Source: Azolla caroliniana (lineage: Eukaryota; Plantae; Polypodiophyta). Taken from it: a stretch of DNA of 64,000 nucleotides. Positions 14,241 through 42,145 of this stretch are shown here, one piece after another (the first letter of the stretch is position 1; every line of letters starts with the position of its first letter). The stretch is taken from contig JBHGNT010000020.1 of NCBI GenBank assembly GCA_043228905.1, positions 6,820,001 to 6,884,000 of the forward strand, written 5' to 3'. The position numbers and the translations under genes were made by a program. The notes below the pieces were generated by a model that was given only the letters and a program-made list of their open reading frames with translations, was not told the DNA's origin and made no database searches.

Positions 14241-14619
14241 TGTAAAGAATCAGATATGATTCTTGGGTAGCGGAAGAGATGTGTGTTATGTGTATGTGTG
14301 AGAGGAATTAGAGAAGAGAATAGAAAGACAAGATAGATAAGCTAGAGAAATGAAAATACTCAAGAAGAAGATGTATATTCACAAGTAGAATGAGAAATGA
14401 AAATGTAGCATAACAAGGAGTCACAACCGACTTAGTATGAAGTATGAGGGTGCTTTATATAGAGTCACCCTCTCTCTTCATTAACTTTACAACAAACACA
14501 CACTCTCTCTCTCTTGGGGAATGTGAAGACTCATAGTCATGGGGAATATGTAGTTTCTCATTAGTTATGTGCCATAGAATATGATTCTATGACACATAGT
14601 TAATGTGTAGAGAGTAGTG

Positions 14620-14655
14620 AACACGTTCGCGTTCACAAGTGGAAGGATCGCGCAT
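14620..14655 (+). repeat. Left TIR, copy 1
   Basis: AACACGTTCGCGTTCACAAGTGGAAGGATCGCGCAT. Confidence 0.92.
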
Positions 14656-14977
14656 AAATGGAAGGATAAGGGAAATTTTAGGGGTTTTTCAATGATTTTA
14701 CAAAACACATTGATACCAGTATCATACAAGTTCAAACATACTATGAAAAAGGTTAAAAATCCACTATTTTCGTGATTTAGAAGTAACTAAAAAAAGACGA
14801 ATTTCAAAAACATACATTCTCAATTTATATCACAAACTTTACAACCAATGTTATTTTATAAGAAACGATTTTTTAGAAATCATAAGAATTCAAAACACAT
14901 GATTTTATATTACTCGATTTGTTACAAGCGGAATGTAGTTACACTTAATAGCCAAATATACATTCATGATCACTCCT

Positions 14978-17758
14978 TTACGGAGAATCACTACTATAAC
15001 TAATATACAATGACGATTCCTCCTCCTCATCCTCGGATGTACCAATCAGTGCATTATCTTCGTCATAAACCAAATGGTTTGACTCTAGATTATATGTAGC
15101 AGATCTCGTTTGCCTTTGACTCGAGCCACCTTGTAGACCTGGTAATTTTTCTTTTATTATATCTATTGTTGACTTCCTTAATCGTCCGGCTTTTGTAAGT
15201 GTGAAGTCGTACACAATGATATCCACATCAGAGATATCAAGGGTCGAGGTGTTACGAATGTTTCGCTTCCTCTTCCTACCTCCCCTTCTTGTTTGGCATT
15301 CAATCATCTCCAATGTATACTTACCTGTAAAAGCATTTGCACTTCTAGTGTTGTACCAATGAACATTTATAGACTTGATCGTGTTTTCTATTTCATGCAT
15401 TAGCACTTCTAGAATTTTACCAACCCAAAATCGGTGGCCATGTGAGTTCTCATCAGCCGGCGTTGCAATCAACATCCCCGCGGTGAGCTCTTGCAAATTT
15501 CCTTGCCATCTAGCTTCGACTGCTTTGGTCATCCTTGGTCCCACATAAATGTCTCTTTGTTGTGGATGGACCAAGCTGTCATTAATCGCATTTACTAGTC
15601 GCTCCGGACTTCTATTTACGCGATCATGTTGCAGCGAGCATGTGAATGGCGTTTCCAAATTCCAATTATCAACAGATACACAATTGTCTATAATTTCTTT
15701 CTGATCACTATAAAATACATCCCACCATGACCTGTCTTGTTGTGCGGCATATTTCTTGGCGGCCTCAATATGCTTTCTTTTTTCTTCTAAGGCTTGGAGC
15801 CATGACCGTTTTTGTTCTGATACCAAGTCGCTCTGCAACTGTCCTTTCTTCTCAATTGGCATTTGCTTAGCTCCATGGACAATTGTACTCGGCATACAAA
15901 GTAATAACTGGCAACCACCTTCAGGTTCCCATGTTGTAGAAGATGAATATTGTTTAGCATACAAAAGTGTAGAACCACTTATTCCATTTTTCTTTATCAA
16001 AAAAATGTGATTGAAACTTATATTGTTTAACTGAGCAAGCACTTTAACATTCCCACCACCCCCATCTAATATATATCTCTTAAAGTCATATACCTCCTTC
16101 AAGTGTAACACTTTTGGGCGTGGTGTATAAGCATCACAAATGACATCAAATAGTTTAGGTAAAGTGAAAGCATCATGCCGAGACAACTGTCTGGAGAATG
16201 TGCTAAACATCTGATCTATATGGTCATGTGTGTGGCCAACCAAAAGGAAATTGACTTTCACTTTCCTAAACAATTCTCGGTTGACCAACATACTTAGATA
16301 GCCAAATACAGTTGAATTTTTGTTCTCTCTAGCAGTATTGTCCAATTGAATGTATAGAACAGGGGGGAAAGGTTGTCCCCAAGACATCAAAACTCGGTGA
16401 ATCGCTGTAACTGTTAGGTTAGGGTCATTGTGAACATTGGGGTAAGTAATGAAGACGTGAGGTGGAACAGACCTATTATAAGCCAAGCATCCCACCAAGT
16501 GCATTTGAACAAGGCACTCATCATTGACATCTTTGGGGAGTCTCCGCATATGCGGCAAGCATGTCTTCTTCTGGTCCATGCCATCTATCATTAAGCACAT
16601 GTATTGTTCGGGCCTCTTCAAACACTTCTCTCTATGATGCATCGCCTTCCTTCGTTCCAAGGATTGTGCCTCACGATGCTCTTGTAGTAACTTCTTACTC
16701 GTATCCTTTTCCATTGATGTCTTTGCACCTTTAGCCAAACTTTTAAGATTTGCACAAATGGAGCAATACCCCATACGTACTTTACGAGGAATAATAACAT
16801 TTGAAAACCGAGCTCTCCATAATCTTGTGAATTGGCTATAGGTGATAGACTTATTACGTGAGCCCAGCATATCAGATCGATAGACATCATAAACTTCCCG
16901 ACGGGTATAATTATCAGAAAGATGCATCCTACCTGTAGTGGGCATTACTTCACAATTTAACTGAAAGTAAGTTTTCATCCAGCCAATAGCTAGTCTTCCA
17001 ATTGCACCTTTCATACTTGGAACCTCTTTACAATTGAGCATCTGATCCCCGCTAAGTAGACGTTGTTGTACTCTATGTAGCCGCATGTTACTAACACATA
17101 ACGCAATTTTGAATGCAACTCTACATATCTGTTGCGCATGGAAGATATAATACTCGAATGATACTTTGATCCCCGTACATTTGTCAGATACTAGTTGCAT
17201 ATGTGACCCGAGGTAAGTGTCTTGCTCATCACCGGTCATCGAAAAATAGTATCGCCTTAATTCTCGCAACTTTGATTTTCCAATCATAGACATACAACCA
17301 CGGGCACAACATATTTTGTTGACATCAAATCCAATCTGTTTATCTGATGTCACCAAGCTAAATCTAGCCAGACGAATTCTTCGTGGGATTCTTCTAATAT
17401 GCATAGGGCTCCCAGATTTCTCTTCCTGCATAGAGGTTGGTGTAACCTTGTTACAGTCTAATTCTCTGTTGTGACCATCGCCAATGTTATTCAATGTTTC
17501 CTGGGCACTTCCTTCATTCTCGCTATCTTTATTAATATCATATTCTTCAATAGAGAACTCTTCACATGTGTCATTATTTACATTCCGTGTAGATGAGCTC
17601 AGACAATATTCTTCGATAGAATATGGTGAGTCGGTCGACAGACAATATTCTTCAATCGAATATGGTGACTCTGATGACAAACAATACTCTTCAGTAGAAA
17701 ACGATGGGTCTGATGACAAACAATATTCTTCAATCGAGAACGGTGAATCTTCACTCAT
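14978..17758 (-). CDS. Sola-like (DUF7869-type) DDD transposase, 926 aa, uninterrupted
   Basis: Motifs ICRVAF, CSIC, IDGMDQ, IQLDNTARENKN and FLLVGHTHDHIDQMFS; inside TIRs with a 4-bp TSD; stop 11 codons earlier than in copy 2 (TAA vs GAA). Confidence 0.85.
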   Translation of the reverse strand: MSEDSPFSIEEYCLSSDPSFSTEEYCLSSESPYSIEEYCLSTDSPYSIEEYCLSSSTRNVNNDTCEEFSIEEYDINKDSENEGSAQETLNNIGDGHNRELDCNKVTPTSMQEEKSGSPMHIRRIPRRIRLARFSLVTSDKQIGFDVNKICCARGCMSMIGKSKLRELRRYYFSMTGDEQDTYLGSHMQLVSDKCTGIKVSFEYYIFHAQQICRVAFKIALCVSNMRLHRVQQRLLSGDQMLNCKEVPSMKGAIGRLAIGWMKTYFQLNCEVMPTTGRMHLSDNYTRREVYDVYRSDMLGSRNKSITYSQFTRLWRARFSNVIIPRKVRMGYCSICANLKSLAKGAKTSMEKDTSKKLLQEHREAQSLERRKAMHHREKCLKRPEQYMCLMIDGMDQKKTCLPHMRRLPKDVNDECLVQMHLVGCLAYNRSVPPHVFITYPNVHNDPNLTVTAIHRVLMSWGQPFPPVLYIQLDNTARENKNSTVFGYLSMLVNRELFRKVKVNFLLVGHTHDHIDQMFSTFSRQLSRHDAFTLPKLFDVICDAYTPRPKVLHLKEVYDFKRYILDGGGGNVKVLAQLNNISFNHIFLIKKNGISGSTLLYAKQYSSSTTWEPEGGCQLLLCMPSTIVHGAKQMPIEKKGQLQSDLVSEQKRSWLQALEEKRKHIEAAKKYAAQQDRSWWDVFYSDQKEIIDNCVSVDNWNLETPFTCSLQHDRVNRSPERLVNAINDSLVHPQQRDIYVGPRMTKAVEARWQGNLQELTAGMLIATPADENSHGHRFWVGKILEVLMHEIENTIKSINVHWYNTRSANAFTGKYTLEMIECQTRRGGRKRKRNIRNTSTLDISDVDIIVYDFTLTKAGRLRKSTIDIIKEKLPGLQGGSSQRQTRSATYNLESNHLVYDEDNALIGTSEDEEEESSLYISYSSDSP

Positions 17759-18155
17759 GGCTTAAGGTCTAGATAGGGCTCTCTAAGTTATACTCCTCTC
17801 TAAACATATACTCCTCTTTAAACATAAATTTCTCTCTAAACAAAAGCCAAATCAATAGAATGTCTATATTATGTAATATTCTATTAATACAATACATCAA
17901 AAAATTATTTTTAATAAAGTAATTGTACTTAAATTATCAATTATTATATAAACTAGATCTATATGAAGTTAAATCAAGTAAAATATAAAACTAATCATTA
18001 ACAAGCCATGAATATGTTGGATTAATGTTAAAATCATTGGCTAATTAATGGCACCCATTTTGATATAGAACGTCTCACTCATTGGTTCCTTAATGCTCAC
18101 CATTTTATATATTAGACTTATCAATCATTGGTTAATTCATGCCCACATCTTTAAT

Positions 18156-18680
18156 GCCGTATCGAGTTCATGTATACAATACAAATATTTATACATGAAC
18201 TCGATACGCCGTATCGAGTTCATGTTTAAAGTGTAGGTTTTAAACATGAACTCGATACGGCGTATCGAGTTCGTGTTTAAAACCTACACTTTAAACACGA
18301 ACTCGATACGCCGTATCGAGTTCGTGTTTAAAGTTTGAATTTTAAATAGGAACTCGATACGCCGTATCGAGTTCCTATTTATAGTGTAGGTTTTAAACAC
18401 AAACTCGATACGGCGTATCGAGTTCGTGTTTAAAGTGTAGGTTTCAAACACGAACTCGATACGCCGTATCGAGTTCCTGTTTATAGTGTAGGTTTTAAAC
18501 ACGAACTCGATACGCCGTATCGAGTTCCTGTTTATAGTGTAGGTTTTAAACACGAACTCGATACGCCGTATCGAGTTCCTGTTTGAAACCTACACTTTAA
18601 ACACGAACTCGGTACGTCGTATCGAGTTTGTGTTTAAAGTGTAGGTTTTAAACAGGAACTCGATACGCCGTATCGAGTCC
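18156..18680. repeat. Array of 25-bp palindromes GAACTCGATACG-N-CGTATCGAGTTC, exact 51-bp period, 10 full copies plus one half
   Basis: Palindromes start at 18197, 18248, 18299, 18350, 18401, 18452, 18503, 18554, 18605 and 18656. Confidence 0.95.
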
Positions 18681-18683
18681 CTG

Positions 18684-18690
18684 TATATAA
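18684..18690 (+). promoter_or_regulatory. Candidate TATA box for the cargo gene
   Basis: TATATAA immediately after the last palindrome; TATATAAA in the same position in copy 2 (~36450). Confidence 0.35.
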
Positions 18691-19123
18691 GAAGGCTTTG
18701 AGAGAGAAAAATCGTGTTTTGGGGGTAACAAATAATTATGGGGTGGAAATGATATCAAATTGTCTGGCAAAATCAGTCTTTTTTATGTTGACTTTCCTTA
18801 CTTTTAAAGAAAAACATGCTCTAATTATAGGTGTTTTATGACCTACTTTAGCTTAAAATAGTAGAAAATGATCCACAAATTACCTTTACGATAGCAAATT
18901 CTCCTCAATATAGGTTTGGAATCTATATAAGTCATACCTACTATTTAAAAGAATATATAACCCATTTTACTTATTACGATATATATTTTCTAGGTTGAAT
19001 AGCCCTGCCTATAATAGATTTTTGAATATGTTACTACTCTTGGGAACTGTTCTTCATTATAATATACAACCTCAATCTACGTGACTACCTAACTTATGTT
19101 TTTGCATATACTTTCTTAAATAG

Positions 19124-22100
19124 GTCGTTTGAGAACCTGTCGGACAGACCCGTGAAGAAAATAAAGCTTCGCATACAAGGTTCTCCAATCGAAGCCCAGA
19201 CCAAGTTAGCTCCTGAGACCATGAAGAGAGGAAAAAAGCTTCTCTTTAACGAAGAGACAAAATCTCAGCCACATAGTGATGTTAGCCAAAAGAAACTTGT
19301 CGCCGCTACTGGAGGCGAAGACCTTCCTGACCGAGATCTAACGGACAAGGAATGGTGTATGCAATATGTCGACTCAAAGAAAAAAGTCGTATTGTATACA
19401 GCAAAGAAGAAGGGTGAGGGGCAACTTGGAAAGGAAACCCCATTTATGTATGGCCGTATTCTACGATTTGACTACGAAGATGCAGATTCGGCCAACATAC
19501 TGGTAATGATAGAGTGCTCCAAGGGGGTACGTAAAGTGTTCCTTTCAGAAGACCTTTTAGTAAAGGAATCTTGTGGGCCAGAAGTGTTCAAAAAAGCACT
19601 TGATAACTCACAAAACCTTATTGTTACCTTGAGGCCTTATATACAAGGCCATGTAACTCTAAGAGATGAAGTGCCCTCCACATTGAAGGCCACAAAAAAG
19701 GTATCCAAAGTCCAGTCAAGACCAGCAAAGAAGAAGACAACGAAAATGTCGGATACGGATTCAACAAGTGAAAATGAAGAGGAGGATAATAAGGGGACGC
19801 CAGGAGCCGAGCTGGCCTCGGGTGTTTTGTCATCCGAGCAGAATAAAATAAGGAGAGAGTTAATGCAACGGAAGCTGGTCAGGAAAGGGCAAGTATTTAA
19901 TTTGCCTATAACACACATCCATCGGCCCCCTATTGATGCAAAAACAGGTCGAAGACCACTTGAGATCAGAGAGCCTCACCGCATGCATGTTCAAAATCTC
20001 AAGAAAAAAATGTAAATTAATCCTCATGCCACTGTGGTGCCTTTTATTGTTATGGTAGATCCTGAAGAATGTGAAACCATTGAAGATTTTGATATTAGAA
20101 AGCATGATCAATATAATTATTTTGTCATTGGTGGATCGCATTCAGCAGAGGCACGTCGACAACTTGTGAGAGAACATCCAACCACTTTCTTCTTCAAGTA
20201 TGCCGAGTGCAAAATTTATGTTGGGCTCACAACCGAAGAGGCTAAGCTGTTGGCATGGGACCATAATAATGATAATGACTATAGGCAGAAAATGTCGTCT
20301 ATTGAGCGTATACGGTTCTTCCACCACGAGTATTTAGATGTGAAACAAAAGTTTGGTGTGAAGTTACATCCAGGCCTTCGACGTCAATGTCTGCATGAAG
20401 TTGGCATTGTGGTAGATGATAATGTTAGGTCCGATGGTCTTCGAAAGTATGAGTCTTGGTTTCAATTGGCGTTTAGAGATGGAGAAGTATGGGACCTACA
20501 AGATCAAATCTTCTCAATGTGGGAGAATAAGGAGGTAAAGGGTCAACGACAAAAGAAATGTAGGGAGAAATGTAGAGTTAAAGTCACAAGCTGCCAAGAA
20601 AATTGACTTGACAATTGAAGAAGCGGCAGATGACATGAAGTTGTCTCTATGGAGAGCGATGCAAGGTATTAAGGACGAGCAGCTTCTTGTGTCGGTTTTG
20701 TCAAGGGTTGTGGCGAAAGATTTAAGCCTTGAAGAAATGGTCACTGAGTTCAATAAGTAAGTCTTTCAAATACTAAAATTGTAGTCTATCTGGTGTAATT
20801 CAAAGTTCTAATCTTGATTTCTAATTTTACAGTCATAAGGTGTACATGAAGATCCAAGAAGTTATGATGAAACAACTTGGATGTATAACTTGGGAACAAG
20901 TGACCGAGGATTATCCTCTAACGTCTTCGTATAAGGCGTTATCAGAGTATTTTATTGCATTCAAGGATTGGGTTAGTATTCATGTTTTTTCATTACCCTT
21001 TCATCATATGTAGAGCTTGTATAATAATACCTGATGTCCAATTGCTTCTATTAGAAACCGTGTCGAGGCAAGAAACAAGGAGAAGTTAAGGATATACACG
21101 ATTTCCCCACATCCTTCCTTGCACATCTCGAGCGAGCCAGAAAAGAAAAGGATCGTCGCTTAGTCAAGGCGTACGAAATGGAGGAAGATGGCTCGTTTAA
21201 AAAATTTAGCCACAAAAAAGATATTACGAGAGATCTTTACTACAATGTGGTTTGCGGTGATGTCATCGACTTGATCTAGAAGGTGCCAAAGAAGGAATAT
21301 ACGCTAATGATTGCGGATATTCCTTACGGATTTCGAATGGCTGGGTCATCATACGACGATGAACCGTTTAGGTTTAAACAATTGGAGAAGATGGTCAAGG
21401 ATTTCGCTGAGCTAACGACCGCATCCTTGTGGCGAATAATTGTCTTTCATAGTATGGACCAATGGTACTCGGTAGCTCAAGCTTTGAGATCTCGTTGCCA
21501 TGGCATCGAGAACCTTGCATGGTAAGGATTATTTATAGGTGTCTTTCACTATATTGCAATTCTTAAGGTTGTTGAATCTATTCTTAACTCAATGAATTAT
21601 TTTTTATAGGCTCAAGACCAATGTAAATAGAGGGCCAACTTTTCGGTTCGTTAATGCCATTGAATACATAACGGTTGGCTACTTCGATGAAATTAAGAAA
21701 CAGAGAATCAAAGAGCATTCTAATGAAGTTGGAGGTTCAAATCTGTTGGTATATCCAGCAGTGACTCGGAAATTGCGACATGTCACCACGACAGAACGGG
21801 GACTTGTCAACCCATACCAAAAACCTCAACGACTTATGATGCGCTTGATCAAGATGTTTTCTGTCGAAGGAGACTGGATATTAGATCTTTTTTCTGGCAC
21901 AGGTATTCCTCGAACTAGGGTAACGATCTTGAGATAACCAATCACTTTTTTTTCGTTTGACAACTAAATCTTCTTGTTACTTACATCACAGGAACTACGT
22001 CAGCATGTGCATTGAAGCTGTTTAGAAATACAGTTGCATTGGAGAAGGACGAGGACCAAGTTATAATTATTAATATGCGGATTAAGGCTTTGTGGGAGTG

Positions 22101-22344
22101 CCCAGACCAGGATGAGGAGGTCGGTGCAAAGAACCTCGCCAATATAGAAAGGTTTCAACCTGCTTCGCGAGAGCCTATTCCTCCATTAGCCGGCGAACCG
22201 AGGGAGCTAATAGAGCTTGATGATGAGCTTATAGAAGATATTTCGTTGGCTCGGCTAACAGGGGAAACCAATGCACGTATAGCCGAAGACAGTTCTACAC
22301 AAGATGATGAAGAAAATGACGTTGATGAATTGATTGCTATGTAA
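19124..22344 (+). pseudogene. Spliced ParB/Srx-like plus beta-class N6A/N4C DNA methyltransferase gene (~930 aa when repaired)
   Basis: Exons ~19124 (ATG 19221)-20756, 20833-20971, 21055-21521, 21610-21902, 21992-22344 with GT-AG introns; ParB-like VPFIVMV..YFVIGGSHSAEA..LTTEEAKLLAWDHN; MTase CGDV..LMIADIPYG, LAWLK, NPYQKP, ILDLFSGTGTT; lesions TAA 20013, frameshift ~20565, TAG 21277. Confidence 0.88.
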
Positions 22345-22737
22345 TAGACTCTATAAAGAATATGACACTGACGATTTGTTAAGATTTCACATTATTAATA
22401 CCAATTTTGGGTTTTACCTAGTGAATTCTATTCTTTATAATCTTCTATATGTTTCAATTTTATTTTTATATACTTGATTAGTAGATTTATGACATTGGTT
22501 TCACCGCGTGCATAGCTGACTACCGAACTTATGGAGAAACATTGACTAGTTTAAATGGAGGCTGATTTTGGTCCAAGCTAACCTTAACAGAACATGGCCC
22601 TATAATTGTTGCCATGACTGTCCATGTTGTTATTATGGATCTTTGTCTTCTATTGTTAAAACTATTATGTTTCTATTCCATTGCTGCTTAGATTGTGTAG
22701 TGTGTTGATAATGGTTCCAGTTGCGTTATCGTTCGGA

Positions 22738-23015
22738 GTTTGATCTTGTGTGAATCACCTAAGCAATAGAGTAGATCAATTTTAAATACAGGTATGAAAG
22801 CCTAATAGGTTTGTTATTTCCACGACATTATCCTAAAGTTCACTGCCTTACATTGTGCACAATTATATACACATATGGTTTGATCCCATATGAACAAACT
22901 GAGGAATAGATTAGATCAACTTTAAATACAAGTATTGAATACTTTAATAAGTTAGTTATTCCAATCACTTATCCTAATGTGCACTATCCTACATTTTCCA
23001 CAATTACATACATGC
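22738..23015. repeat. Two diverged ~140-bp tandem units near the right end of the Sola-like element (also ~40596-40870)
   Basis: GTTTGATC...AATAGA.TAGATCAA.TTTAAATACA at 22738 and 22878. Confidence 0.7.
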
Positions 23016-23356
23016 ACGTATGGGTCAAAATATAAATTATATCTCATTTTATTAGTATGGATACAAGTACACCTCATATTTTTGTAAAACCTACCTAATT
23101 AATATAAGTCTTTAAGTTAGTGTTTCCCTTGTCGCACAATAGTGCCATATTGAGCCATAGTTGAACTTTATTATGCCTACATTAACTTATCAACATGTCT
23201 AAACTTGCATGATTTCTAATGATCTCCACTCGTAGATCTATCATGTATTTTTATATTTGCAAATTCTCATCAAGTTGAGGAACATGTGATACTAGTGCAT
23301 CCAATTTTTGTAGAGAGGGTGTATTTGCTTCGTTTTAAGAAGATTCTACAAGTGGA

Positions 23357-23392
23357 ATGCGCAATCCTTCCACTTGTGAACGCGAACGTGTT
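23357..23392 (-). repeat. Right TIR, copy 1
   Basis: ATGCGCAATCCTTCCACTTGTGAACGCGAACGTGTT. Confidence 0.92.
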
Positions 23393-23492
23393 AGTGGTGT
23401 GACTCTTGACTTTTGAGTAATCATGGATTCTCAAAAGGTGTGTTCACATGTTGTGCTATGTTGAGCTTGATTCTCAACACGCCCCCTCAAGC

Positions 23493-26400: not shown

Positions 26401-27603
26401 GATGGCTTCTGTCTTGATGCTGAAATTGCGAGTTGTTTTTGTAAATCGGGCGTTGTCCACCTCGTCTGCCACGTCCTTGGCCGAATCGGCCTCTTCTTGC
26501 ACGGCCGCGTCCTCTTCCTCCGTCTGAATGCATGTACAGCATATGCTCCTCGTTCGAACATGATTCTCTTCGACCAACAACATGGATTGAAGATCAAAGA
26601 AGGAGGGTGAATTCTCCCGTGCTTGTACGGCGGTTCGCATCGCGCTCAATTGTGGTGCAAGGCTACCGAAACATACTTGCACCATATCGTCATCCTTCAC
26701 ATTTACGCTTATCGAGCCAAGAGAATCACGAAGCTCCTTGATCTTCAAGGTGTAGCTCGTGACGGACATATCCCTTTGTTGGATATTATTCAACTCTTGG
26801 CGGAGTTGAAGCTTCCTCGCGGTCGTGTTGGCGGCAAAAATCTTTCGTAGATTCTCCCATGCTTCCTTCGGCGTCTTGGCTTCTCAAATATACCCGAGCA
26901 TGTGGTCGTGAACACATGTCGGCAAGCAATACATCACTCGGCTTGCCGGTTGCTCCCATGTTTGTTATGTACACATAACGTTGGTGAGGGTAGGTCACTA
27001 ATATTTACATTAGTGAAGGGTATGTTCACTATTATTAAAAAGGGGACTAATGATTGGATAGAATGAATGATATGTGCATGCACTATCATGATTTAGACAA
27101 CCAATGAATAGAGAGCCTTTTAGAAAGGCACATCTATTCAAGGGGCCTAGGAAAAGGTATAAATATGAGGCTTAGCTACCCTCATAGGGATCATCACGTC
27201 GGAAGGCTGCTGTCGTAGACACCGGTGGTGCGGGCTAGGCTTTCGTCTCGACGATCGTGTTTATCTCTTCCAAGGTATTAGTCATCCTAATATCCGGCGG
27301 TATGGGACGTCGGTGGTAGGTTGGCTATGTCTAGATCATAGCTCGGGGGTGGTGGGGTGGAACGGGTTCTTCTATCCAATCTATTTTCTTCCTTTTTACT
27401 TGATTTGGTCTATTGATTAGTAATAGACTCTTAACAATGTTGCATAGTCGACATCTTCCGGCTCGGGCCGATTTTCTTGTGCTCCTTTGATGTAGCTCCA
27501 ATAGCCTTGGCCGACAAGGTATTAGTGCATCTTGTACTCCCAAGATGCAAAGTTGTTGCGATCCAACTTCTCGCTAGGGAGAGCGCTCCCCATTTGAGTA
27601 TTC
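23493..27603 (-). pseudogene. pol: Copia gag-pol (gag, knuckle, PR, INT, partial RT, RNase H), frameshifted and internally deleted
   Basis: CGYCGKIGHHEEEC, WFVDSSASNH, WHKRIGH..CAAC, HSDVWGP, ILYVDDL, TKHIEVHY. Confidence 0.9.
26963..27436. mobile_element. Solo LTR (474 bp) inserted in copia gag
   Basis: TGTTA...TAACA; 5-bp TSD ATGTT (26958-26962, 27437-27441). Confidence 0.85.
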
Positions 27604-27777: not shown

Positions 27778-28223
27778 TGTAAAGAATCGGATATGATTCT
27801 TGTGTAGTGGAAGAGATGTGTGTTATGTATATGTGTGAGAGGAATTAGAGAAGAGAATAGAAACACAAGATAGATAAGCTAGAAAAATGAAAATACTCAA
27901 GAAGAAGATGTATATTCACAAGAAGAATGAGAAATGAAAATGTAGCATAACAAGGAATCACAACCGACTTAGTATGAAGTATGAGGAGGGTGCTTTATAT
28001 AGAGTCACCCTCTCTCTTCATTAACTCTACAACAAACACTCTCTCTATTGGGGAATGTGAAGACTCATAGTCATGGGGAATATGTAACTCATTAGTTATG
28101 TGTCATAGAATATGATTCTATGACACATAGTTAATGTGTAGAGAGTAGTGGTGTGACTCTTGACTTTTGAGTAATCATGGATTCTCAAAAGGTGTGTTCA
28201 CATGTTGAGCTTGATTCTCAACA
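27778..28223 (-). repeat. Copia 5' LTR
   Basis: Near-identical to 14241-14619 plus 23397-23479. Confidence 0.9.
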
Positions 28224-28680
28224 GGTGGAAAATAAGAGCTCCCATAGAGACTACGGAGAATCTATTCAAAGCATATCCCAGTGTGAAATACTCAAGAAGA
28301 AGATGTATATTCACAAGAAGAATGAGAAATGAAAATGTAGCATAACAAGGAATCACAACCGACTTAGTATGAAGTATGAGGAGGGTGCTTTATATAGAGT
28401 CACCCTCTCTCTTCATTAACTCTACAACAAACACTCTCTCTATTGGGGAATGTGAAGACTCATAGTCATGGGGAATATGTAACTCATTAGTTATGTGTCA
28501 TAGAATATGATTCTATGACACATAGTTAATGTGTAGAGAGTAGTGGTGTGACTCTTGACTTTTGAGTAATCATGGATTCTCAAAAGGTGTGTTCACATGT
28601 TGAGCTTGATTCTCAACAGGTGGAAAATAAGAGCTCCCATAGAGACTACGGAGAATCTATTCAAAGCATATCCCAATGTG
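27889..28680. repeat. 395-bp tandem duplication spanning the copia LTR/gypsy junction
   Basis: AAATACTCAAG at 27891 and 28286; junction CAACA-GGTGG present twice. Confidence 0.88.
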
Positions 28681-30288: not shown

Positions 30289-33200
30289 TCATGCCGCGGA
30301 CTTTCCATCCCACCATAGTCGATGTTTATTTACAGGGGCCTCCACATCTCGCTCGCGTGTACACGACCGTTCCAAAGGTACACTACGTTGTTCTTAAGAG
30401 CATCGGTAAAATCGGCGCACTCTCTCCGAATGTGGCCGACAACATCGCACCACATGCACCTCTAGTCATTCGGAGGGAGTGAGTAAAGCGATTGACCCTG
30501 ACTTCCCTTTGAGCTTGAGCGATCTGGAGATCGTGCACCATCTTCGTCACCTCTTCCAGAGCTACATCACTGGATGGTCCCTCGACCACGTTGGTCAAAA
30601 TTGAACCCGACTCGAGGCGCCTTCTTGTCTCGTCTGACCAAGTCGAAAACTCCTCCGACCTCTTCTCGGCGGACGAGAACCCCGCTTCATTCCATTCACG
30701 TCGTTTATCAAAATGGCTACAAACCCTTTTAACCACTGGCCAATCAGTCGTGAGCCCTTCATCCATCTCTAAGAGGAAACCTACCTTCTCCTAATGGAGT
30801 GGGTCGACCGACTTGATAAATAGCAAGACCTTGGTCGTATCGAACACGGTCCAGTCTAGTGCCAAAAGTCGTGTGAATTGGAGAAGTGTCAATGTATTAT
30901 GACCTTTGCCCGGGAGCTCCAACCACTCTATGAGCTCCCTCTTCAACAACCAGAGCGAGTCTTCAATGCCATACCTCTAGAGGATTAGCTCCTCGAACTC
31001 CGCCTAGTTACAACAGTTGGCTTGTATTTCAAGCACCTCTGTATGGATGCTTGACATGACAACTCGGGTAAATCCGGACAGGCGCCTGTCCTCCGAGATG
31101 TCCCGCATCAGCATTTCGGCCTTATAGGCCTCCAAGTAGCCCGTTACGTCCTTACCATTAAATCGACCTATCGTGTCGACTATCGTTTCGATGGCCCAAC
31201 CGAGACCACTCGTGCTTTCCTAAGCATTCACCAAGCGATCGACAGCCACCACCATCGCATCGGCAAGCTTGCTTCCCCTCATCTCGAACTCCGTTGCTGC
31301 CCTTTTAATGTCGGTTTCACCAAAGATGTCGCGGGATTTCCACATGTATGTGTCGGTACGGGGCGGGACCATTGGGGCTTGAATGAAGGAGCCGATAAGG
31401 AGAGTGGGAAATGATTATCCGGATCGATCTTCGGATAATTTCACTGTCACACAAGTTAGTATGTAACTGATCTAGACCAGTCACGGGATGCCAAATGATG
31501 AGCACACGGGCTTAGGCACGTATGTTATTCCGAACGATGAGTACACGGGCTCGAACACTTTGTTATGCACGCAAGAGGAAGGGAACAAAGATGATGATAC
31601 AAACAAAAATAGAAAGACCCAGGGGATCCAGGAGCTACAAAGTAATCGATTAACTTGAAATAATACATAGTAAAATCGGACTTGACCGGCAATAGAGCTT
31701 TGTGCGCTCCATGCACACATACAAAGATCCTAGTGAGCCTCTAGTTGGGAGCACACAGACTTCCAACGTTGCCTCGTAGTACAATGACCGACAAAAAGCA
31801 AGAAACGAGTAGCCAACTCGACAATCCAACAGAGCTTGTGCCTCCTAAACAATGGATCCCTTTAATGGTCTCTCTCGTCTCCTTTTATAAACCCAAGGAG
31901 AGGAGAATCGGTGTTATATCAGCCATTTAAGACAACTGATTCTGTCAGTGATTCTTCCCCTCGTTTTCCTCCCTACACATGTTTCATTCTCTCTTTTTGT
32001 GGGACATTAAAGTACCCATCTAAATCATACAACTAGTACTTATTATATTTCGATATTTACATTTGTTCTTAATATATACATAGGCTTCATTTGTGTGCAT
32101 CCTTGCACACCCCCATTCACACTCATCTGGCTCCCCTTTCCTCCTATGGCCAGAATCCTTCACAACATCGTGCTTGGAACGCGAAGATCACGCAACGACT
32201 GCGTCATATTGGGTTTGCTACGTCGAAATCGAACTCTTCACTATTCATCCCACAAGGTCGGCATGGGCCGGTAAGTATTCTACTCTATGTTGATGATCTA
32301 GTCATCGCCGACACCAACCTAGAGGAGATCGGCCATGTAAACACCCAACTAACCACGCCATTTGACATGAAGGATCTAGGGGACCTTCATTACTTCCTCG
32401 GGATCGAAGTGATCCGCACCCCGGACGACATACTCATTAGTCAACATCACTATGTTTTGAGTATGCTCTTCAAGTTTAGAATGATAGATTGCAAATCCAT
32501 TGCAACTCCTCTTGATAGAAATGTCAAGTTCTGCCCTGAATCTGGAATGACATGCGACCTGACACGGTTCAGACAAATTGTTGAAAGCCTTATCTATTTG
32601 ACAATCACTCGGCCTAACCTCAGCTATCCGGTTAGCTTGATTAGTCAGTTTATGTTGCAACCGACCACAACACAGCTTTAGTGCGCACAAAGGATCTTAC
32701 GATATGTGCGCCGCATGAAGGATCGGGGATTGTTGTACCGTCACGGCATAGCCGAACAACTGATTGGTTATACTGATGTTGATTGGGCCAGAGACGCCAC
32801 GGATTGCTGGTCGACATCAGGGTTCACATTCTCTCTTGGGAGCGCGGCGATAGCGTGGAGTAGCAAGAAGCAACTGACAGTGTCCCTGTCGAGTAGCGAG
32901 GCTGAATACCGAGGAGCCACCGTCGCTACGTGTGAGGCAATATGGCTCAAGAAACTGTTACAAGACTTACGAGACAAAGTTACCGATTCGATCCCGATCT
33001 ACTATGACAACATCAGTAGCATGCAGCTAGCAAAGAACCTTGTGTTCCATGCTCGCACCAAGCACATAGAAGTACACTATCACTTTGTGCGTGAATGGGT
33101 CCTAAGCGATGAGAACACATTCGCGTTCACAAGTGGAAGGATTGCGCATAACTGGAAGGATAAGGAATATTTTGGTTGATTTTAGGGCTTTTTCAATGAT

Positions 33201-33448
33201 TTTACAAAACACATTGATACTAGTATCATACATGTTCAAATATACAATGAAAAAGGTTAAAAATCCACTATTTTCATGATTTAGAAGGAAATAAAAAAAG
33301 AGGAATTTCAAAAAGTTACATTCTCAATTTATATCACAAACTTTACAACCAATGTTATTTTATATTAAACGATTTTTTAGAAATCATAAGAATTCAAAAC
33401 ACATGCTTTTATATTACTCGATTTGTTACAAGCGGAATGTAGTTACAC

Positions 33449-35571
33449 TTAATAGCCAAAAATACAATCATGATCACTCCTTTCCGGAGAATCACTACTA
33501 TAACTAATATACAATGACGATTCCTCCTCATCATCCTCTGATGTACCAATTAGGGCAGTATCTTTGTCATAAACCAAATAGTTTAACTCTAGATTATATG
33601 TAGCAGATCTCGTTTGCCTTCGACTCAAGCCACCTTGTAGACCTGGTAATTTTTCTTTTATTATATCTATTGTTGACTTCCTTAATCGTCCGGCTTTTGT
33701 AAGCGTGAAGTCGTACACAATGATATCCACATCAGAGATATCAAGGGTCGAGGTGTTACGAATGTTTCGCTTCCTCTTCCTACCTCCTCTTGTTGTTGGG
33801 CATTCAATCATCTCCAATGTATACTTAGTTGTAAAAGCATTTGCACTTCTAGTGTTGTACCACTTATTTCATTTTTCTTTATCATAAAAATGTGATTGAA
33901 GCTTATATTGTTTAACTTGGCGAGCACTTTAACATTCCCAACACCCCCATCTGATATATATCTCTTAAAGTCATATACCTCCTTCAAGTGTAACACTTTT
34001 GGGCATGGTGTATATGCATCACAAATGACATCAAATAGTTTAGGTAATGTGAAAGCATCATGCCGAGACAACTGTCTAGAGAATGTGCTAAACATCTTAT
34101 CTATATGATCATGTGTGTGGCCAACCAAAAGAAAATTGACTTTCACTTTTCTAAACAATCCTTGGTTGACCAACATACTTAGATAGCCAAATACAGTTGA
34201 ATTTTTGTTATCTCTAGCAGTATTGTCCAATTGAATGTATAGAACAGGGGGGAACGATTGGCCCCAAGACATCAAAACTCGGTGAATCACTGTAAATGTT
34301 AGGTTAGGGTCATTGTGAACATTGGGGTATGTAATGAAGACGTGAGATCCAACTGACCTATTATAAGCCAAGCATCCCACCAGGTGCATTTGAACAAGGC
34401 ACTCATCATTGACGTGTTTGGGGAGCCTTCGCATATGCGGCAAACACGTCTTCTTCTGGTCCATGCCATCTATCATTAAGCACATGTATTGTTCGGGCCT
34501 CTTCAAACACTTCTCTCTATGATGCATCGCCTTCTTTCGTTCTAACGATTGTGCATCATGATGCTCATGTAGTAACTTCTTACTCATATCCTTGTCTATT
34601 GATGTTTTTGCACCTTTAGCCAAACTTTTAAGATTTGCACAAATGGAGCAATACCCCATGCATACTTTACGTGGAATGATAACATTTGAAAACCGAGCTC
34701 TCCATAATCTTGTGAATTGGCTATATGTGACAGACTTATTACGTGAGCCCACCATATCAGATCGATAAACATCATAAACTTCTCGATGTGTGTAATTATC
34801 AGAGAGGTGCATCCTACCTATAGTGGGAATTACTTCACAATTTAACTGAAAGTAACTTTTCATCCAACCAATAACATGTCTTCCAATTGCACCTTTCATA
34901 CTTGGAACCTCTTTACAATTGAGCATATGATCCCCGCTAAGTAGACGTTGTTGTACTCTATGTAGCCGCATGTTACTAACACATAACACAAATTTGAATG
35001 CAACTCTACATATTTGTTGCACATGGAAGATATAATACTCGAATGATACTTTGATCCCCGTACATTTGTCAGACACTAGTTGCATATGTGACCCGAGGTA
35101 AGTGTCTTGCTCATCACTAGTCATTGAAAAATAGTATCACCTTAATTCTTGCAACTTTGATTTTCCAATCATAGACATACAACCAAGGGCACAACATATT
35201 TTTTTGATATCAAATCCAATCTTCTTATCTGATGTCACCAAGTTAAATCTAGCCAAACGAATTCTTTGTGGGATTCTTCTAATATGCATAGGGCTTCCAG
35301 ATTTCTCTTCCTGCATAGAAGTTGGTGTAACCTTGTTACTATCCAATTCTTTGTTGTGACCATCGCCCATGATATTCGATGTTTTATTGGCACTACCTTC
35401 ATTCTCCGTATCTTTATTAATATTGTATTCTTCAATAGAGAACTCTTCACATGTGTCATTATTCACAGGCGTTGTAGGTGAAGATGAGCTCAGACAATAT
35501 TCTTCGATAGAAAACGAAGAGTCTGATGACAAACAATATTCTTCAATCGAGAACAGTGAGTCTTCACTCAT
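33449..35571 (-). pseudogene. Sola-like transposase pseudogene
   Basis: Colinear with 14978-17758; CGA>TGA stop at 35137-35139; 619-bp deletion between ACCA microhomologies (junction 33859-33862). Confidence 0.9.
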
Positions 35572-36245
35572 GGCTTAAGGTTCACACAGAGCTCTTTAAG
35601 TTATGTGCTTAGGCTAACATAAAAAACTGATAAGCTCCTCTCTAAACATATACTCCTCTCTAAACATATACTCCTCTCTAAACATAAACTCCTCTTTAAA
35701 CAAAAGCTCCCTCAATATAATGTCTATATTATTTAATATTATATTAATACAATAAATAAAGATATTATTTTTAATATAATAATTGTATTCAACATATTAA
35801 TAATTACTTAAACTAGTCTATATAAAGTTAAACAAAGTATAATATAAATACAATCATTACCAAGCCACATATATGTTGGATTAAAGTTAAAATCATTGGT
35901 TAATTAATGGCACCCATATTTAATATAGAACTTCTCAGTCATTGGTTCATTCATGGCCACATCTTTACTATAAATCAATTAAGAGTCATAAAAATGTTTC
36001 TTTGAGTATTCAATCATTGGTTCATTCATGAACCTTTTATCATTGATTCCTTCATGACCTTCAAAGTCATTGTATGTAAGTGTGACTATAAAATAATCAT
36101 TATTATGTTAGTTTGACTATTTAATCATTGATGCATTCATAAGCATCATTTATTTCAAATCCATTAGAGAGTGATTGGTACACTCAAGATTAGGTACTAA
36201 ATAAAGTAACTTTGGTTAAAGTGATTGTGGTTACTAACTAACTAA

Positions 36246-36478
36246 TCGAGCGTTCCTGTGTAAAGTATGTGTTCTATAAAGGAACTCGATACGGAGTATC
36301 GAGTTCCTGTTTAAAGTTTATGTTTTGCACATGAACTCGATACGTCGTATCGAGTTCCTGTGTAAAGTATGTGTAACTCGATACCCTGTATCGAGTTCCT
36401 GTAGAAACACTAACTTTATACAGGAACTCGATACGACGTATTGAGTTACTATATAAAACACAAAATTTAAACAGGAAT
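36246..36478. repeat. Shorter, degenerate palindrome array (~4 copies)
   Basis: AACTCGATAC-NNN-GTAT(C/T)GAGTT at ~36282, 36333, 36374 and 36424. Confidence 0.85.
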
Positions 36479-37020
36479 ATTGTGTCTTTGGGGGAACAAT
36501 TTAGTCTATGTGTGAAAAGATACCAAACTTTCTATCAAAATCAAACTTTTTTAGTGACATTTGCCATATTTTGTAACAACTAGGGGCCTTACTTAAAAAG
36601 GTTTTATGACCTATTATAGCTTAAAATAATAGAAAATAACCCACGAATTACCTTTATGATATCAAATTTAAGGATATGGTATCAAGATGCTATATATCTT
36701 TGTATACTTATTAAGATATATAATTTTCGAAGTTGAATAGCCCTTACTAGAATGGATTTCCGAATAAAGGACTATCATGTTCACTCAATACATGATTGAT
36801 ATTTATAGTTTACCACAAATCGCTTGCTAGTTTTAGTCTTCGTCTAATTATGTATATTTTAATATACAACCTTAATCTACGTAACCACCTAACTTATGTT
36901 TTCGCATGTCCTTTCTTAAATAGGTCGTTTGAGAACTTGTCGGACCGGCCTGTGAAGAAAATAAAGCTCCAAATTCAGGGTTCTCCAATTGAAACCCAGA
37001 CCCTAATAGTTTTGGAGAAC

Positions 37021-40000
37021 ATGAAGAGAGGAAAAAAGCTTCTCTTCAACGAGGAGACAAAATCTCAACCATCCAATGAGGTCAGCCAAAAGAAAATGTT
37101 AGCAGCTACTGGTGGTGAAGACCTTCCTAACCGTGATCTAACGGACAAGGAATGGTGAATGCAATACGTCGACTCCAAGAAAAAAGTCATGTTGTATACA
37201 ACAAAGAAGAAGGGCGAGGGGCAGCTTGAAAATAATGAAACCCCATTTATGTATGGCCGTATTCTACGATTTGACTATGAAGATTCAGATTCGGCCAACA
37301 TACTTGTAATGATAGAGTGCTCTAAGGGGGTACATAGAGTGTTCCTTTCTAAAGATCTTCTAGTAAAGGAATCTTGTGGGCCAGAAGCTTTCAAAAAAGA
37401 TCTAGAAAGCTCACAAAACATTATTGTTACCTTGAGGCCTTATATACAAGGCCATGTAACTCTAAGGGAGCCATTGCCCTCCCCAATAAAGGCCCCGAAA
37501 AGGGCATCTAAAGTACAATCAAGACCACCAAAAAAAAAGACCACTAAAATGTTGGACTCCAACTCATCAAGCTCAAACGAAGATGAGGACACTAAGGGGA
37601 CGCCAAGAGCTGAGCTGGCATCGGGTGTGTTGTCATCCGAGCAAAATAAGATACAGAGAGAGTTAATGCAGCGTAAACTGGTCAAGAAAGGGCAAGTGTT
37701 TAATTTTCCTATAACACACATCCATCGGCCCCCTATTGATGAAAAAACAAGACGAAGACCACTTGAGATTAGAGAGCCACACCGAATGCATGTGCAAAAT
37801 CTCACAAAAAAAATGAAAATTAATCCACATGCTATCGTTGTGCCTTTTATTGTTATGGTGGATCCTGAAGAATGTGAAACCATTGAAGATTTTGATATAA
37901 GAAAGCATGATCCATATAATTACTTTGTCATTGGTGGATCGCATTCGGTAGAGGCACATCGGCAACTTGTGAGAGAACATCCAACGACTTTCTTCTTCAA
38001 GTATGCCGAGTGCAAAATTGACGTGGGTCTCACAACTGAAGAGGCAAAGCTGTTGGCATGGGACCACAATAACGATAATGACTATAGGTAGAAAATGTCA
38101 TCGATTGAGCGTATAAGGTTCTTCCACCATGAGTATTTGGACATCAAACAAAAGTTTGGTGTGAAGCTACATCCAGGCCTACGACATCAATGCTTGCATT
38201 AAGTCGGCATTGTGGTAGATGATAATGTTAAGTCCGATGGTCTTCGAAAATATGAGTCTTGGTTTTAATTGGCCTTTAGAGATGGAGAAGTATGGGACCT
38301 ACAAGATCAAATCTTCTCAATGTGGGAGAATAAGGAGGTCAAGGGTCAACGACAAAAGAAATGTAAGATAGACCCTCAACTAGAATTAAAGTCACAAGCG
38401 GCCAAGAAAATTGATTTGACAATTGAAGAAGCGACTAACGACATGAAGTTGTCTCTGTGGAGAGCGATTCAAGGTATTAAGGACGAGCAGCTTCTTGTGT
38501 TTGTTTTGTCAAGGGTTGTGGCCAAAGATTTAAGCCTTGAAGAAATGGTCACTGAGTTCAATAAGTAAGTCTTTCAAATAGTGATATTGAAGTCAATATG
38601 GTGCAATTAAAAGTTCTAATCTCGTTTTCTAATTTCACAGTCATAAAGTGTACATGAAGATCCAAGAAGTTATGATGAAACAACTTGGATGTATAACTTG
38701 GGAACAAGTGACCGAGGATTATCCTCTAACGTCTTCATATAAGGCGCTATCGGAGTATTTTATTGCATTCAAGGATTGGGTTAGTATTGGTGGTTTTTCA
38801 TTAAGCTTTCATCATATGTAGAGCTTGTATAATAAAACTTAATGTCCTATTGCTTCTATTAGAAACCGTGTCGTGGCAAGAAACAATGAGAAGTTAAGGA
38901 TATACACGATTTCCCGACATCCTTCCTTGCACATCTCGAGAGAGCCAGAAAAGAAAAGGATCGTCGCTTAGTCAAGGCGTACAAAATAGAGGAAGATGTC
39001 TCCTTCAAAATATTTAGCCACAAAAAAGATATTACGAGATATCTTTACTACAATGTGATTTGCGGCGATGTCATTGACATGATCCAAAAAGTGCCAAAGA
39101 AGGAATATACGCTAATGATTGCCGATATTCCTTATGGATTTCGAATGGCAGGGTCATCATACGACGATGAACCATTTAGGTTTAAACAGTTGGAGAAGAT
39201 GGTCAAGGATTTTGCTGAGCTAACGACTGCATCCTTGTGGAGAATAGTTGTCTTTCATAGTTGTCTTTCAGAGTATGGACCAAGGGTACTCAATAGCTCA
39301 AGCTTTGAGATCTCGTTGCCATGGCATCGAGAACCTTGCATGGTAAGGATTATTTATAGGTCTCATTCACTATATTGCCTTTCTTAAGATTGTTCAATCT
39401 ATTCTTAACTCGATGTAATATTTGTTATAGGATAAAAACCAATGTAAATAGAGGGTGAACCTTTCGGTTCGTTAATGCCATTGAATGCATCACATTTGGC
39501 TACTTCGATGAAATTAAGAAACAAAGAATCAAGGAGCATTCTAATGAAGTGGGAGGTTCAAATCTGCTAGTATATCCAACAGTGACATGGAAATTGCGAC
39601 ATGTCACCACGACAGAACGGGGACTTGTCAACCCATACCAAAAACCTCAACGACTTATGATGCGCTTGATTGAGATGTGTTATGTTGAAGGACATTGGAT
39701 ATTAGATCTCTTTTCTGGCACAAGTATTCCTCGAGCTAGGGTAATGATCTTGAGATAACCAATACTGAATCTTTTTTGTTTGAGAACTAATTCTTCTTGT
39801 TACTTTCTTCACTGGAACGACGTCTGCATGTGCATTGAAGCTCTTTAGAAACACAGTTGCATTGGAGAAGGACGAGGAGCATGTTATATTTATAAAAATG
39901 AGGATTAAGGCTTTGTGGGAGTGCCTAGACCAGGACGAGGAGGTCGGTGCAAAGAACCTCACTGATACAGAAAGGTTTCAACCTGCTTCGTGAGAGCCTA

Positions 40001-40167
40001 TTCCTCCATTAGCCGGGGAACCAGGAAAGCTAATAGAGCTTGATGATGAGCTTATAGAAGATATTTCGTTGGCTCGACTAACAAGGGAAGCCAATGCACA
40101 TATAACCGAAGAGACTTCTATACAGGATGATGAAGAAAATGACATTGACGATTTGATTGTTATGTAA
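37021..40167 (+). pseudogene. ParB-methyltransferase cargo gene, copy 2
   Basis: Same exon layout (introns 38565-38640, 38780-38862 and two more); DIPYG, NPYQKP and ILDLFSGT retained; several stops, a small duplication at ~39250-39270, last acceptor mutated. Confidence 0.85.
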
Positions 40168-42145
40168 TAGACTCTTTTAAACATGCGAAATGTATTGTTT
40201 GGATTTCACATTATTAAAACAAATTTTGGGTTTTACTTGGTGGATTCTATTATTTATAATCTTCTATATGTTTTAATTTTATTTTTATATACTTGGTTAG
40301 TAGACTTATGACATTGGTTTCACCGCGTGCATTGTTGACTATCAAATTGATGGAGAAACATGAATTAGTTTAAATTGAGGCTGATTTTGGTCAAACTTTA
40401 CCTTAACATAACATGGTCGTTGAATTGTTGCTATGACTGTCCATGTTGTCATTATGGATCTTTGTCTTCTATTGTTCAAACTATTATGTTTCTCTTCCAT
40501 TGCTGCTTAGATTGTGTAGTGTGTTGATAATGGTTCCACTAGCATTATCCGCATGTTTTTATACGCTTGTAGTTCCACTAGCGTTTTCGTTCGGAGTTTG
40601 ATCCCATCTGAATCACCTAAGGAATAGATTAGATCAATTTTCAATACAAGTATGAAAGCCTTAATAGGCTTGTTATTTCCACCACATTATCCTAAAGTTC
40701 ATTGTCTTACATTGTCCACAATTATATACATATGGTTTGATCCCATACGAACAAACTGAGGAATAGATTAGATCAACTTTAAATACAAGTATTTAATACC
40801 TTAATGAGTTAGTTATTCCAACCACATTATCCTAAAGTGCACTATCCTACATTGTCCACAATTATATACATGCGAGTATGTAGGTCAAAGTATAAATTAT
40901 AACTCATTTGGTTACAAGTACACCTCATATTTTTGTAAAACTTACCAAATTAATATAAGTCTTTAACTTAGTGTTTCCCATGTCGCACATTAGTGACATA
41001 TTGAGCCATTGTTGAACTTTATTATGCCTACATTAACTTATCAACACGTCCAAACTTATTTGTATTTCTAATGACCTCCACTCATAGACCTATCATGTAT
41101 TTTTATATTTGCAAATTCTAATCAAGTTGTAGAACATGTGATACTAGTGCATCCAATTTTTGTAGAGAGGGTATATTTGGATAGTTTCAAGAAGATTCTA
41201 CAAGTGGAATGTGCGATCCTTCCACTTGTGAACATGAATGTGTTTGAGGTCGAACTACGATACGTTAAGACTTATCGATAGGTTGCCGATATTTTCACCA
41301 AGGCCCTCGAACTGGACAAGTTGCAGCACTTCTCGAAGGAGCTTGGACTTCAACACCTTGACATGCTGCACTTGAGGGGGAAAGCAATTAGGATATTAGA
41401 TGAGAAGAACAATAGTTGTGATGATGAGCCAGAACAAGAGCCAGTCGAAGGCAAGAGGAGAGTCAAAGAAGAAGACAAATCAAAGGTCACAACCGATTTG
41501 GTCAAGAGGAATGATTTGGATGAGCCGACTTATGTTACCGGCCGGCAAGAAGGCTTAAGGAGGTCCAAACCAGAGTGTGAAAGGAATAGTTATTCGGGAA
41601 CTGTTGTAATTAGTAGTCTTAATATATATATTATTATATAAGAAGATGTGGACAGACGGACCGGAATCGGTATGCCGATCCGGATCCGGATCCGGAACAA
41701 TCCCGTAAAGGTGCCGGTTGGCACCGTTTTGTATTTCGCACCGGAGACCTATAGAAAGGCCCGGTTACAATGTAATCAGGAGCGGATAATTAATAAAGCT
41801 TATTGTCTTAATCTTCCAGTGTTGATTACCGTTCTGTATTCAATTTTATATCTTAAGCATGTTAATTACAGATTGCTAAGTAACCAATTAAGGTCTAATT
41901 AAGCGTTGTACCGTAAATCATTCTGTCGTACAATCCTTTAGTAAAGTGTCTTAAGTGGACACCCTGTGTTAAGCTGTTGTCTGGCCCTAGCAATAACACA
42001 GTTTTTGGCGACCACGATTCCTGCATAATCGCAGTGAACAATGGCAGGAACGGATGACTAGGCCAACAGACGACTCGGTTACGGAGAGAGCACGAAGACT
42101 TGCTGAACGGAGACGGCGGCGAGAGGCTTTCCAGCAAGCAGAGGT

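Follow-up and report, generated by a model that had tools for sequence, protein, structure and literature searches.

Among the closest described systems is Sola1-1_Ec32 of the brown alga Ectocarpus, a DNA transposon of 21.5 kb with a gene on the opposite strand for a 1104-aa protein that combines a ParB-like part with an N4C/N6A DNA methyltransferase (MTase); the authors proposed that this accessory protein binds and modifies its own transposon (PMC12477816, Genome Biology 2025). Here we describe an element at positions 14620-23392 of a 64-kb stretch of Azolla caroliniana DNA (contig JBHGNT010000020.1, positions 6,820,001 to 6,884,000; this whole stretch is termed the window). It is likewise a DNA transposon with a ParB-like and DNA MTase gene (the cargo) opposite its transposase gene, and the same self-modification hypothesis applies to it. 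It differs from Sola1-1_Ec32, with which it was compared by description only, in its land-plant host and its length of 8.8 kb, and it contains a palindrome array, whereas the description of the Ectocarpus element mentions none.

Plavaka (KDZ) elements of the red alga Bostrychia carry the accessory genes PAG2 (N6A methylase and SET) and PAG3 (ParB and 2-oxoglutarate oxygenase); tandem inverted-repeat arrays adjoin the ParB-domain accessory genes, and self-binding and self-modification were proposed for them as well (10.1101/2025.02.11.637652). These elements share with the one in the window a ParB-domain accessory protein beside inverted-repeat arrays inside a DNA transposon; they differ in the transposase superfamily and in that their ParB domain is fused to a dioxygenase, with the methylase residing on a separate SET protein. 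The order of the cargo domains, ParB and then a beta-class amino-MTase, is that of phage ParB_N + N6_N4_Mtase proteins such as the one of Javan93, which, unlike the fern cargo, are about 420 aa long and intronless, lack a long N-terminal extension and have a ParB_N domain seen by Pfam; we know of no cognate array for these phage proteins.

Eukaryotic fusions that join a helix-turn-helix (HTH) of the ParB type to an adenine MTase of phage origin were also described as chlorophyte-type Dam from chlorophytes and chytrids (Iyer, Zhang and Aravind, PMC4738411). In contrast to the cargo, their MTase belongs to the M.EcoKI/M.TaqI-like group 2 and not to the beta-class PF01555, and they do not come from streptophytes. 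Bacterial-type amino-MTases in eukaryotes further comprise bdelloid N4CMT and Marchantia DN4MT1, the latter with the motif TSPPY (10.1101/2021.02.12.428880). Both are host genes with an S-P-P-Y type motif, whereas the cargo is transposon-borne, has D-I-P-Y and contains a ParB-like domain; a relation to DN4MT1 was set aside because of this difference in the catalytic motif. Retrotransposon-borne adenine methylases were found absent from Streptophyta in a 2026 survey (10.64898/2026.05.21.726589).

The window element is thus a land-plant member of a barely studied, already reported kind. An earlier note, made from the sequence of the window, had taken the combination of parts to be possibly new; it is not, as the Ectocarpus element with the same gene pairing was published in 2025. 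The same note asked whether the family had already been catalogued with its cargo: the gene pairing is on record for Ectocarpus and the arrays for Plavaka, whereas no report of a ParB-MTase transposon module in land plants was found in the literature. Added to the published notes are strong purifying selection on the cargo, a linkage to the transposase that is conserved over deep divergence, and arrays of fixed position that are palindromic in every case and specific to the lineage, and that are concrete candidate binding sites. The module is present in streptophytes (the fern-like genome of the window, Ceratopteris, Adiantum, Riccia, Chara and Ginkgo), lineages in which abundant N6-methyladenine (6mA) is not expected. 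A transposon that carries an enzyme for DNA modification as well as a cognate array could determine its chromatin state by itself and not merely escape that of the host; to our knowledge, this idea was raised only recently, for algae. It is directly testable because Ceratopteris richardii is a transformable model fern.

Boundaries of the two copies

Two copies of the element were found in the window. Their ends, target-site duplications (TSDs) and the empty site of copy 1 are located as follows.

14616..14619, no strand: left TSD of copy 1, AGTG; a single AGTG in the empty site
14620..14655, plus strand: left terminal inverted repeat (TIR) of copy 1, 36 bp
23357..23392, minus strand: right TIR of copy 1, 36-bp inverted terminus
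23393..23396, no strand: right TSD of copy 1, AGTG
28147..28150, no strand: paralogous empty site, copy-1 flanks joined by one AGTG
33114..41244, plus strand: copy 2, TSD TGAG; 619-bp deletion in the transposase, 4-unit array, cargo interrupted by at least 8 stops and by an insertion of 13 bp

The 36-bp inverted terminus (AACACGTTCGCGTTCAC...) is identical in type at both ends of both copies. The left and right TIRs of copy 1 differ by one mismatch over 36 bp, and the first 17 nt of the terminus have four exact occurrences in the 64-kb window, which are the four element ends. The boundaries were fixed by two independent checks. An uninterrupted paralogue of the copy-1 target contains a single AGTG, with the left flank ending at 28150 and the right flank starting at 28147, and in silico removal of copy 2 together with one TGAG restored a Ty1/copia pol reading frame across the joint.

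Identity between copy 1 and copy 2 is 88.9%, with many small indels in copy 2. Both are insertions of an autonomous cut-and-paste transposon family that are old and have partly decayed. The element is a TIR transposon with 4-bp TSDs, and its transposase, array and cargo are moved as a single unit. The earlier note had derived this from the TIR/TSD structure of copy 1 and from the recurrence of the whole layout at 33114-41244 with its own TSD, and both observations held: the AGTG-flanked unit has an empty counterpart with one AGTG, and the TGAG-flanked copy 2 retains array, cargo and a transposase remnant.

The host sequence of copy 2 is the pol gene (C-terminal part, RNase H) of a decayed Ty1/copia retrotransposon (flanks 32714-33113 and 41245-41644). 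The empty site of copy 1 is present twice in the paralogous region (27778-28618), which contains a 395-bp tandem duplication with a second AGTG at 28542-28545; positions 27891-28190 and 28286-28585, 395 bp apart, are 100% identical.

Transposase, cargo gene and palindrome array

The genes and arrays of the element are given below (ORF, open reading frame).

14978..17758, minus strand: transposase ORF, 926 aa, uninterrupted; Pfam DUF7869, E 7.5e-51
18156..18690, no strand: palindrome array, about 10 units of 51 bp between the divergent genes
19221..20756, plus strand: cargo exon 1, taken from the first in-frame ATG, true start uncertain
20833..20971, plus strand: cargo exon 2, with a GT-AG intron on either side
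21055..21521, plus strand: cargo exon 3 with MTase motif IV (D-I-P-Y-G) and a nonsense codon at 21277-21279
21610..21902, plus strand: cargo exon 4, Pfam N6_N4_Mtase, E 2.4e-8; first part of motif I (F-S-G-T-G)
21992..22344, plus strand: cargo exon 5, motif I completed across the intron (G-T-T-S-A...), then acidic tail and stop codon
36283-36457: array of copy 2, 4 units

The same divergent layout of transposase and cargo was found on the Ceratopteris richardii chromosome CM035423.1 (locus L001), on two ENA fern contigs (L002 and L003) and in the liverwort Riccia sorocarpa (L005), so that the linkage, for which the earlier note had proposed a search in other genomes, was recovered in ferns and a liverwort.

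The cargo comprises five exons on the strand opposite to the transposase, and all introns are of the GT-AG type. The exon model was assembled from stop-to-stop pieces of the plus strand and the intact homologue L003, and it rests on GT-AG sites and homology; searches with the cargo were run exon by exon or with naturally uninterrupted homologues. The predicted product has roughly 930 aa. The N-terminus encoded by exon 1 is variable and contains a beta-rich domain; the exon also encodes a linker of low complexity and the ParB-like N-domain plus a helical domain. Compared with intact relatives, the cargo of copy 1 has nonsense codons at 20013-20015 and 21277-21279 and a frameshifting 5-bp deletion near 20569; in that of copy 2, at least 8 stops were counted along with an insertion of 13 bp at 39259. 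The divergent, intron-containing gene of the earlier note was recovered as a predicted five-exon gene with an MTase and a ParB-like fold; neither copy of it is intact. A DNA run with the same organism label contained further contigs of the family, nearly all of which have A at 20013 and C at 21277, giving sense codons, so the two nonsense mutations are private to copy 1. The family is abundant, as judged from 2909 contigs in this run.

Exon 4 matched the Pfam family N6_N4_Mtase (PF01555) with 34.6 bits at a cut-off of 26.7, as had been expected of the cargo, and full-length relatives reached up to 65.7 bits (Ginkgo P0047, 7.6e-18; P0067, 6e-10). Annotated full-length relatives in this family are Ginkgo Gb_37443, the JGI protein P0067 and several proteins from Chara braunii and Adiantum. 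Motif IV (exon 3) lies N-terminal to motif I (F-S-G-T-G / T-T-S-A, exons 4-5, rebuilt over the last intron), and because of this order the MTase is assigned to the beta class. The tetrapeptide of motif IV, canonically (D/N/S)-P-P-(Y/F), reads D-I-P-Y in the window and in L003 and D-F-P-Y in P0067. The predicted enzyme probably writes 6mA, given the Asp at the start of motif IV and the fact that M.RsrI and CcrM, both N6-adenine enzymes, are the closest solved sequences.

Matching MTases were found in 301 phage records, with 24-29% identity to P0067 over the whole MTase domain. The best phage match examined, the adenine-specific methyltransferase of Streptococcus phage Javan93 (MK448835.1), consists of ParB_N and N6_N4_Mtase in Pfam, and the nearest named clusters in the ESM Atlas also have this architecture. 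The fusion of phage kind suggested in the earlier note was thereby recovered, with the MTase domain aligned over its full length. By sequence and predicted structure, the cargo protein is of the phage type, with a ParB-like part joined to a beta-class amino-MTase.

The fold of the ParB-like part was modelled on the intact homologue L003, which is 81-87% identical to the window in this part, using 22 aligned sequences. The AF2 model had a pLDDT (predicted local distance difference test) of 83.5. Foldseek ranked Noc, ParB, Spo0J, sulfiredoxin and KorB first, with ParB or Noc as the top 14 matches (probability 0.99-1.0, best E 4.5e-5). With VIA-align, the N-domain of Caulobacter ParB (7bm8_A) was superimposed at Z 11.2 and a root-mean-square deviation of 2.2 Å over 99 residues; with the helical HTH DNA-binding domain included, Z values of 9-11.6 over 167-204 residues were obtained to ParB, Noc and KorB. 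A Foldseek-independent search with a second model ranked PadC, KorB and pNOB8 ParB first. The ParB assignment of the earlier note is thus backed by the predicted fold, with Z up to 11.6, and by no sequence profile.

The N-terminus of the cargo (window 19340-19700; residues 41-161 of the L003 ORF) contains a confidently predicted beta-rich domain (pLDDT 80-90); with 35-59% identity, conservation is lower here than in any other part of the cargo. Among solved structures, the domain was matched best, though weakly, by the SANTA domain of M18BP1 (Z 5.9 over 101 aligned residues); many PH-like folds came next at Z about 4. The domain could be a chromatin- or protein-targeting module.

The transposase frame of copy 1 is still open, and its Pfam match is to DUF7869, the profile that the earlier note had anticipated. 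When 13 diverse DUF7869 proteins from plants and animals were aligned, D395 and D473 were invariant and D515 nearly invariant; the three residues are compatible with a DDD triad, for which they are candidates. The 926-aa transposase that the earlier note had called intact is uninterrupted in copy 1, whereas copy 2 is short of 619 bp. Relatives are 84-87% identical in ENA assemblies, 54% in Ceratopteris richardii, 32-36% in Riccia sorocarpa, and about 30% in bivalves and sea urchin. The transposase is of the DUF7869 type and, as judged from the 4-bp TSD, the TIRs and the DDD-compatible pattern, most likely of Sola1; the bivalve and sea-urchin relatives fit the known Sola range and are no test of membership. 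A literature search found no mention of DUF7869. Near the C-terminus (window 15100-15300), a motif W-[IV]-G-K-[IV]...W-Y is kept in plant and animal DUF7869 proteins; its sequence is reminiscent of chromo/Tudor-like barrels.

Each unit of the array consists of a palindrome of roughly 43 bp (core AACTCGATACG-S-CGTATCGAGTT) and a spacer of 8 bp, which can have either orientation. The array is upstream of both genes, at a distance of about 400 bp from the transposase ATG and about 500 bp from the cargo ORF. For the half-site AACTCGATAC, 26 occurrences were counted in the window versus 0.09 expected, all of them inside the two arrays; in the 64-kb window it was not found near the element ends. This agrees with the precise palindrome array that the earlier note had placed between transposase and cargo.

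A palindrome array occupies the same place between both genes in every related transposase-cargo locus (L001, L002, L003 and L005), with a lineage-specific sequence. The L003 array has the core of the window with different yet symmetric flanks. The Ceratopteris array (about 16 units of AAGTCGATGCC-W-GGCATCGACTT) and the L002 array (GGAAGTCGATGC-NNN-GCATCGACTTCC) have cores (AAGTCGATGC...) that are changed symmetrically compared with the window core, and that of Riccia is different yet palindromic (ACTGTAT-N6-ATACAGT). The core is thus common to close lineages (window and L003), and changes are mirrored in both arms, as would be expected if a sequence-specific binder acting as a dimer, or a hairpin, constrained them. 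The array is probably the binding site of the cargo protein.

Selection, distribution and competing readings

Between copy 1 and copy 2, the cargo has 0.054 nonsynonymous (dN) and 0.314 synonymous (dS) substitutions per site over 945 codons, giving a dN/dS of 0.17, which is not the neutral value that the earlier note had named as a counter-test; the ratio for the transposase is about 0.37. Across lineages dS is saturated, and dN is 0.10-0.22 for the ParB-like part versus 0.20-0.41 for the transposase, i.e. about half. Dozens of uninterrupted first-exon ORFs of 500-600 aa are present in other fern assemblies. This substitution pattern shows purifying selection on the cargo.

Named hosts of the ParB-like-MTase family are Chara braunii (many intronless paralogues), Riccia, ferns and Ginkgo; no angiosperm was among the matches listed for the family. 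All of these hosts have motile sperm, and this host range may reflect sampling or merely where the transposon survives. A window-type TIR was found in L003 at the transposase side only, and the window TIR motif was not found in the Ceratopteris locus. The latter is bounded by inverted subterminal repeats of roughly 850 nt (2672-3558 and 14938-15813 of the locus) around both genes, with short tandem repeats within; these are far longer than the 36-bp TIRs, and the terminal sequence is unrelated to that of the window family.

The reading that we favour, and regard as fairly likely, is that transposase, ParB-MTase gene and palindrome array form a module that is inherited and selected together, with a cargo protein that binds the array and delivers its MTase to the element. 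Dimers of the accessory protein would recognise the lineage-specific palindromes via the ParB-like/HTH part, and the MTase would thereby be concentrated on the element's own bidirectional promoter. The outcome would be a regulated expression of transposase and cargo, or an element marked as self. Binding of the array, catalytic activity, the modified base and an effect on silencing or mobility are what we infer for this protein.

A bolder version, which we entertain only tentatively, sees a land-plant self-recognition module. In it, a ParB-like reader would co-evolve with the array, and a phage-derived MTase would write 6mA (or N4-methylcytosine) on the bidirectional promoter, which would be kept active against, or separate from, 5-methylcytosine (5mC) silencing by the host. 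Such a module would date far back in streptophytes (Chara, liverworts, ferns, Ginkgo), and host amino-methyltransferases might derive from it.

Several observations weigh against the favoured module. Both window copies are defective and unable to make the cargo protein; the cargo sequence was not found in any RNA run, two putative RNA runs having yielded no contigs. Motif IV is D-I-P-Y and not D-P-P-Y, it reads D-I-P-H in Ginkgo, and in Adiantum P0232 it is E-A-P-Y with a degenerate motif I; from these motifs, MTase activity is uncertain and may have been lost in some lineages.

The ParB-like part had no ParB match in Pfam or NCBIfam with each cargo exon and with intact homologues, a profile of 22 ParB-like regions had no match among PDB sequences, and hhalign to phage ParB-MTase was not significant (E 0.096). 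Canonical CTP-binding ParB proteins have an arginine patch, GERRxR. The corresponding position reads G-G-S-H-S-A-E-A-R-R in the cargo, and the family pattern is G-G-x-H-S-x-x-A-R with G and H nearly invariant. Because the arginine patch is absent, the domain is termed ParB-like and not a canonical CTPase ParB, and CTP-dependent clamping need not apply.

The pairing with the transposase is not obligatory either, because a 49.5-kb Chara locus contains cargo copies and no DUF7869 transposase, and DUF7869 loci in oyster, in mussel and in a second Riccia lineage had no cargo within 10 kb.

The main rival is an autoregulator of the KorB type. The ParB-like/HTH part would bind the palindromes as operators and repress or activate the bidirectional promoter, giving a copy-number-dependent control, while the MTase would be secondary, act elsewhere or be inactive. 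This reading overlaps with the favoured module and is compatible with the same anatomy. The array indeed lies in the shared upstream region of both genes, KorB, a ParB-family repressor with palindromic operators, was a structural match (Z 9.3-9.4 and Z 8.2), and some lineages have a variable or degenerate catalytic motif. However, conservation of the MTase exons equals that of the ParB part (61-91% aa identity across lineages; dN/dS 0.11-0.18 between the window copies), which argues that the enzyme matters. We consider an autoregulator without a role for the MTase at the element unlikely, though the best of the rivals.

Rather less probable still is that the array serves the transposase or a DNA structure, as an internal enhancer or cruciform, and that the ParB-MTase protein acts elsewhere, e.g. 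in genome-wide methylation or in the protection of excised DNA. Tandem palindromes of this length (about 43 bp) could extrude cruciforms, and internal transposition enhancers are known from other elements such as phage Mu. Nevertheless, neither element end, to which the transposase must bind, contains the half-site, and in the unrelated Plavaka elements inverted-repeat arrays stand beside ParB genes despite a different transposase, which ties arrays to ParB and not to a type of transposase (10.1101/2025.02.11.637652).

Passive capture of a host or horizontally acquired gene fragment in neutral decay is very improbable: the stops and frameshifts in the cargo of both window copies would fit it, but the dN/dS of 0.17, the greater conservation of the ParB part than of the transposase across fern genera, the presence of cargo with transposase in a liverwort, the retained intron positions and motif split, and the private nature of the copy-1 lesions all speak against it, and purifying selection on the cargo together with its linkage to the transposase across ferns and a liverwort removed this refutation of the favoured module.

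Other features of the window

Apart from the palindrome array, direct repeats were found at two places in the element.

17779..17842, no strand: 18-bp direct repeats of copy 1, 3-4 units; also in copy 2 at 35630-35719
22803..23015, no strand: subterminal direct repeats, two units, 72-136 nt, kept in copy 2 at 40596-40873

In both copies, 3-5 of the 18-bp repeats (TATACTCCTCTCTAAACA) stand directly upstream of the start codon of the transposase; they may be promoter or 5'-untranslated region elements, distinct from the palindrome array.

The remainder of the window is mostly retrotransposon sequence (23944-26542, 42146-43363, 52819-55050 and 61265-61888). Copy 1 is adjoined by copia-type gag-pre-integrase/RVT_2 ORFs, and the window also contains an ORF for gag and one for a gypsy-type RNase H-integrase. 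A strong A-over-T skew (0.4-0.5) extends across 42-46 kb of the window.

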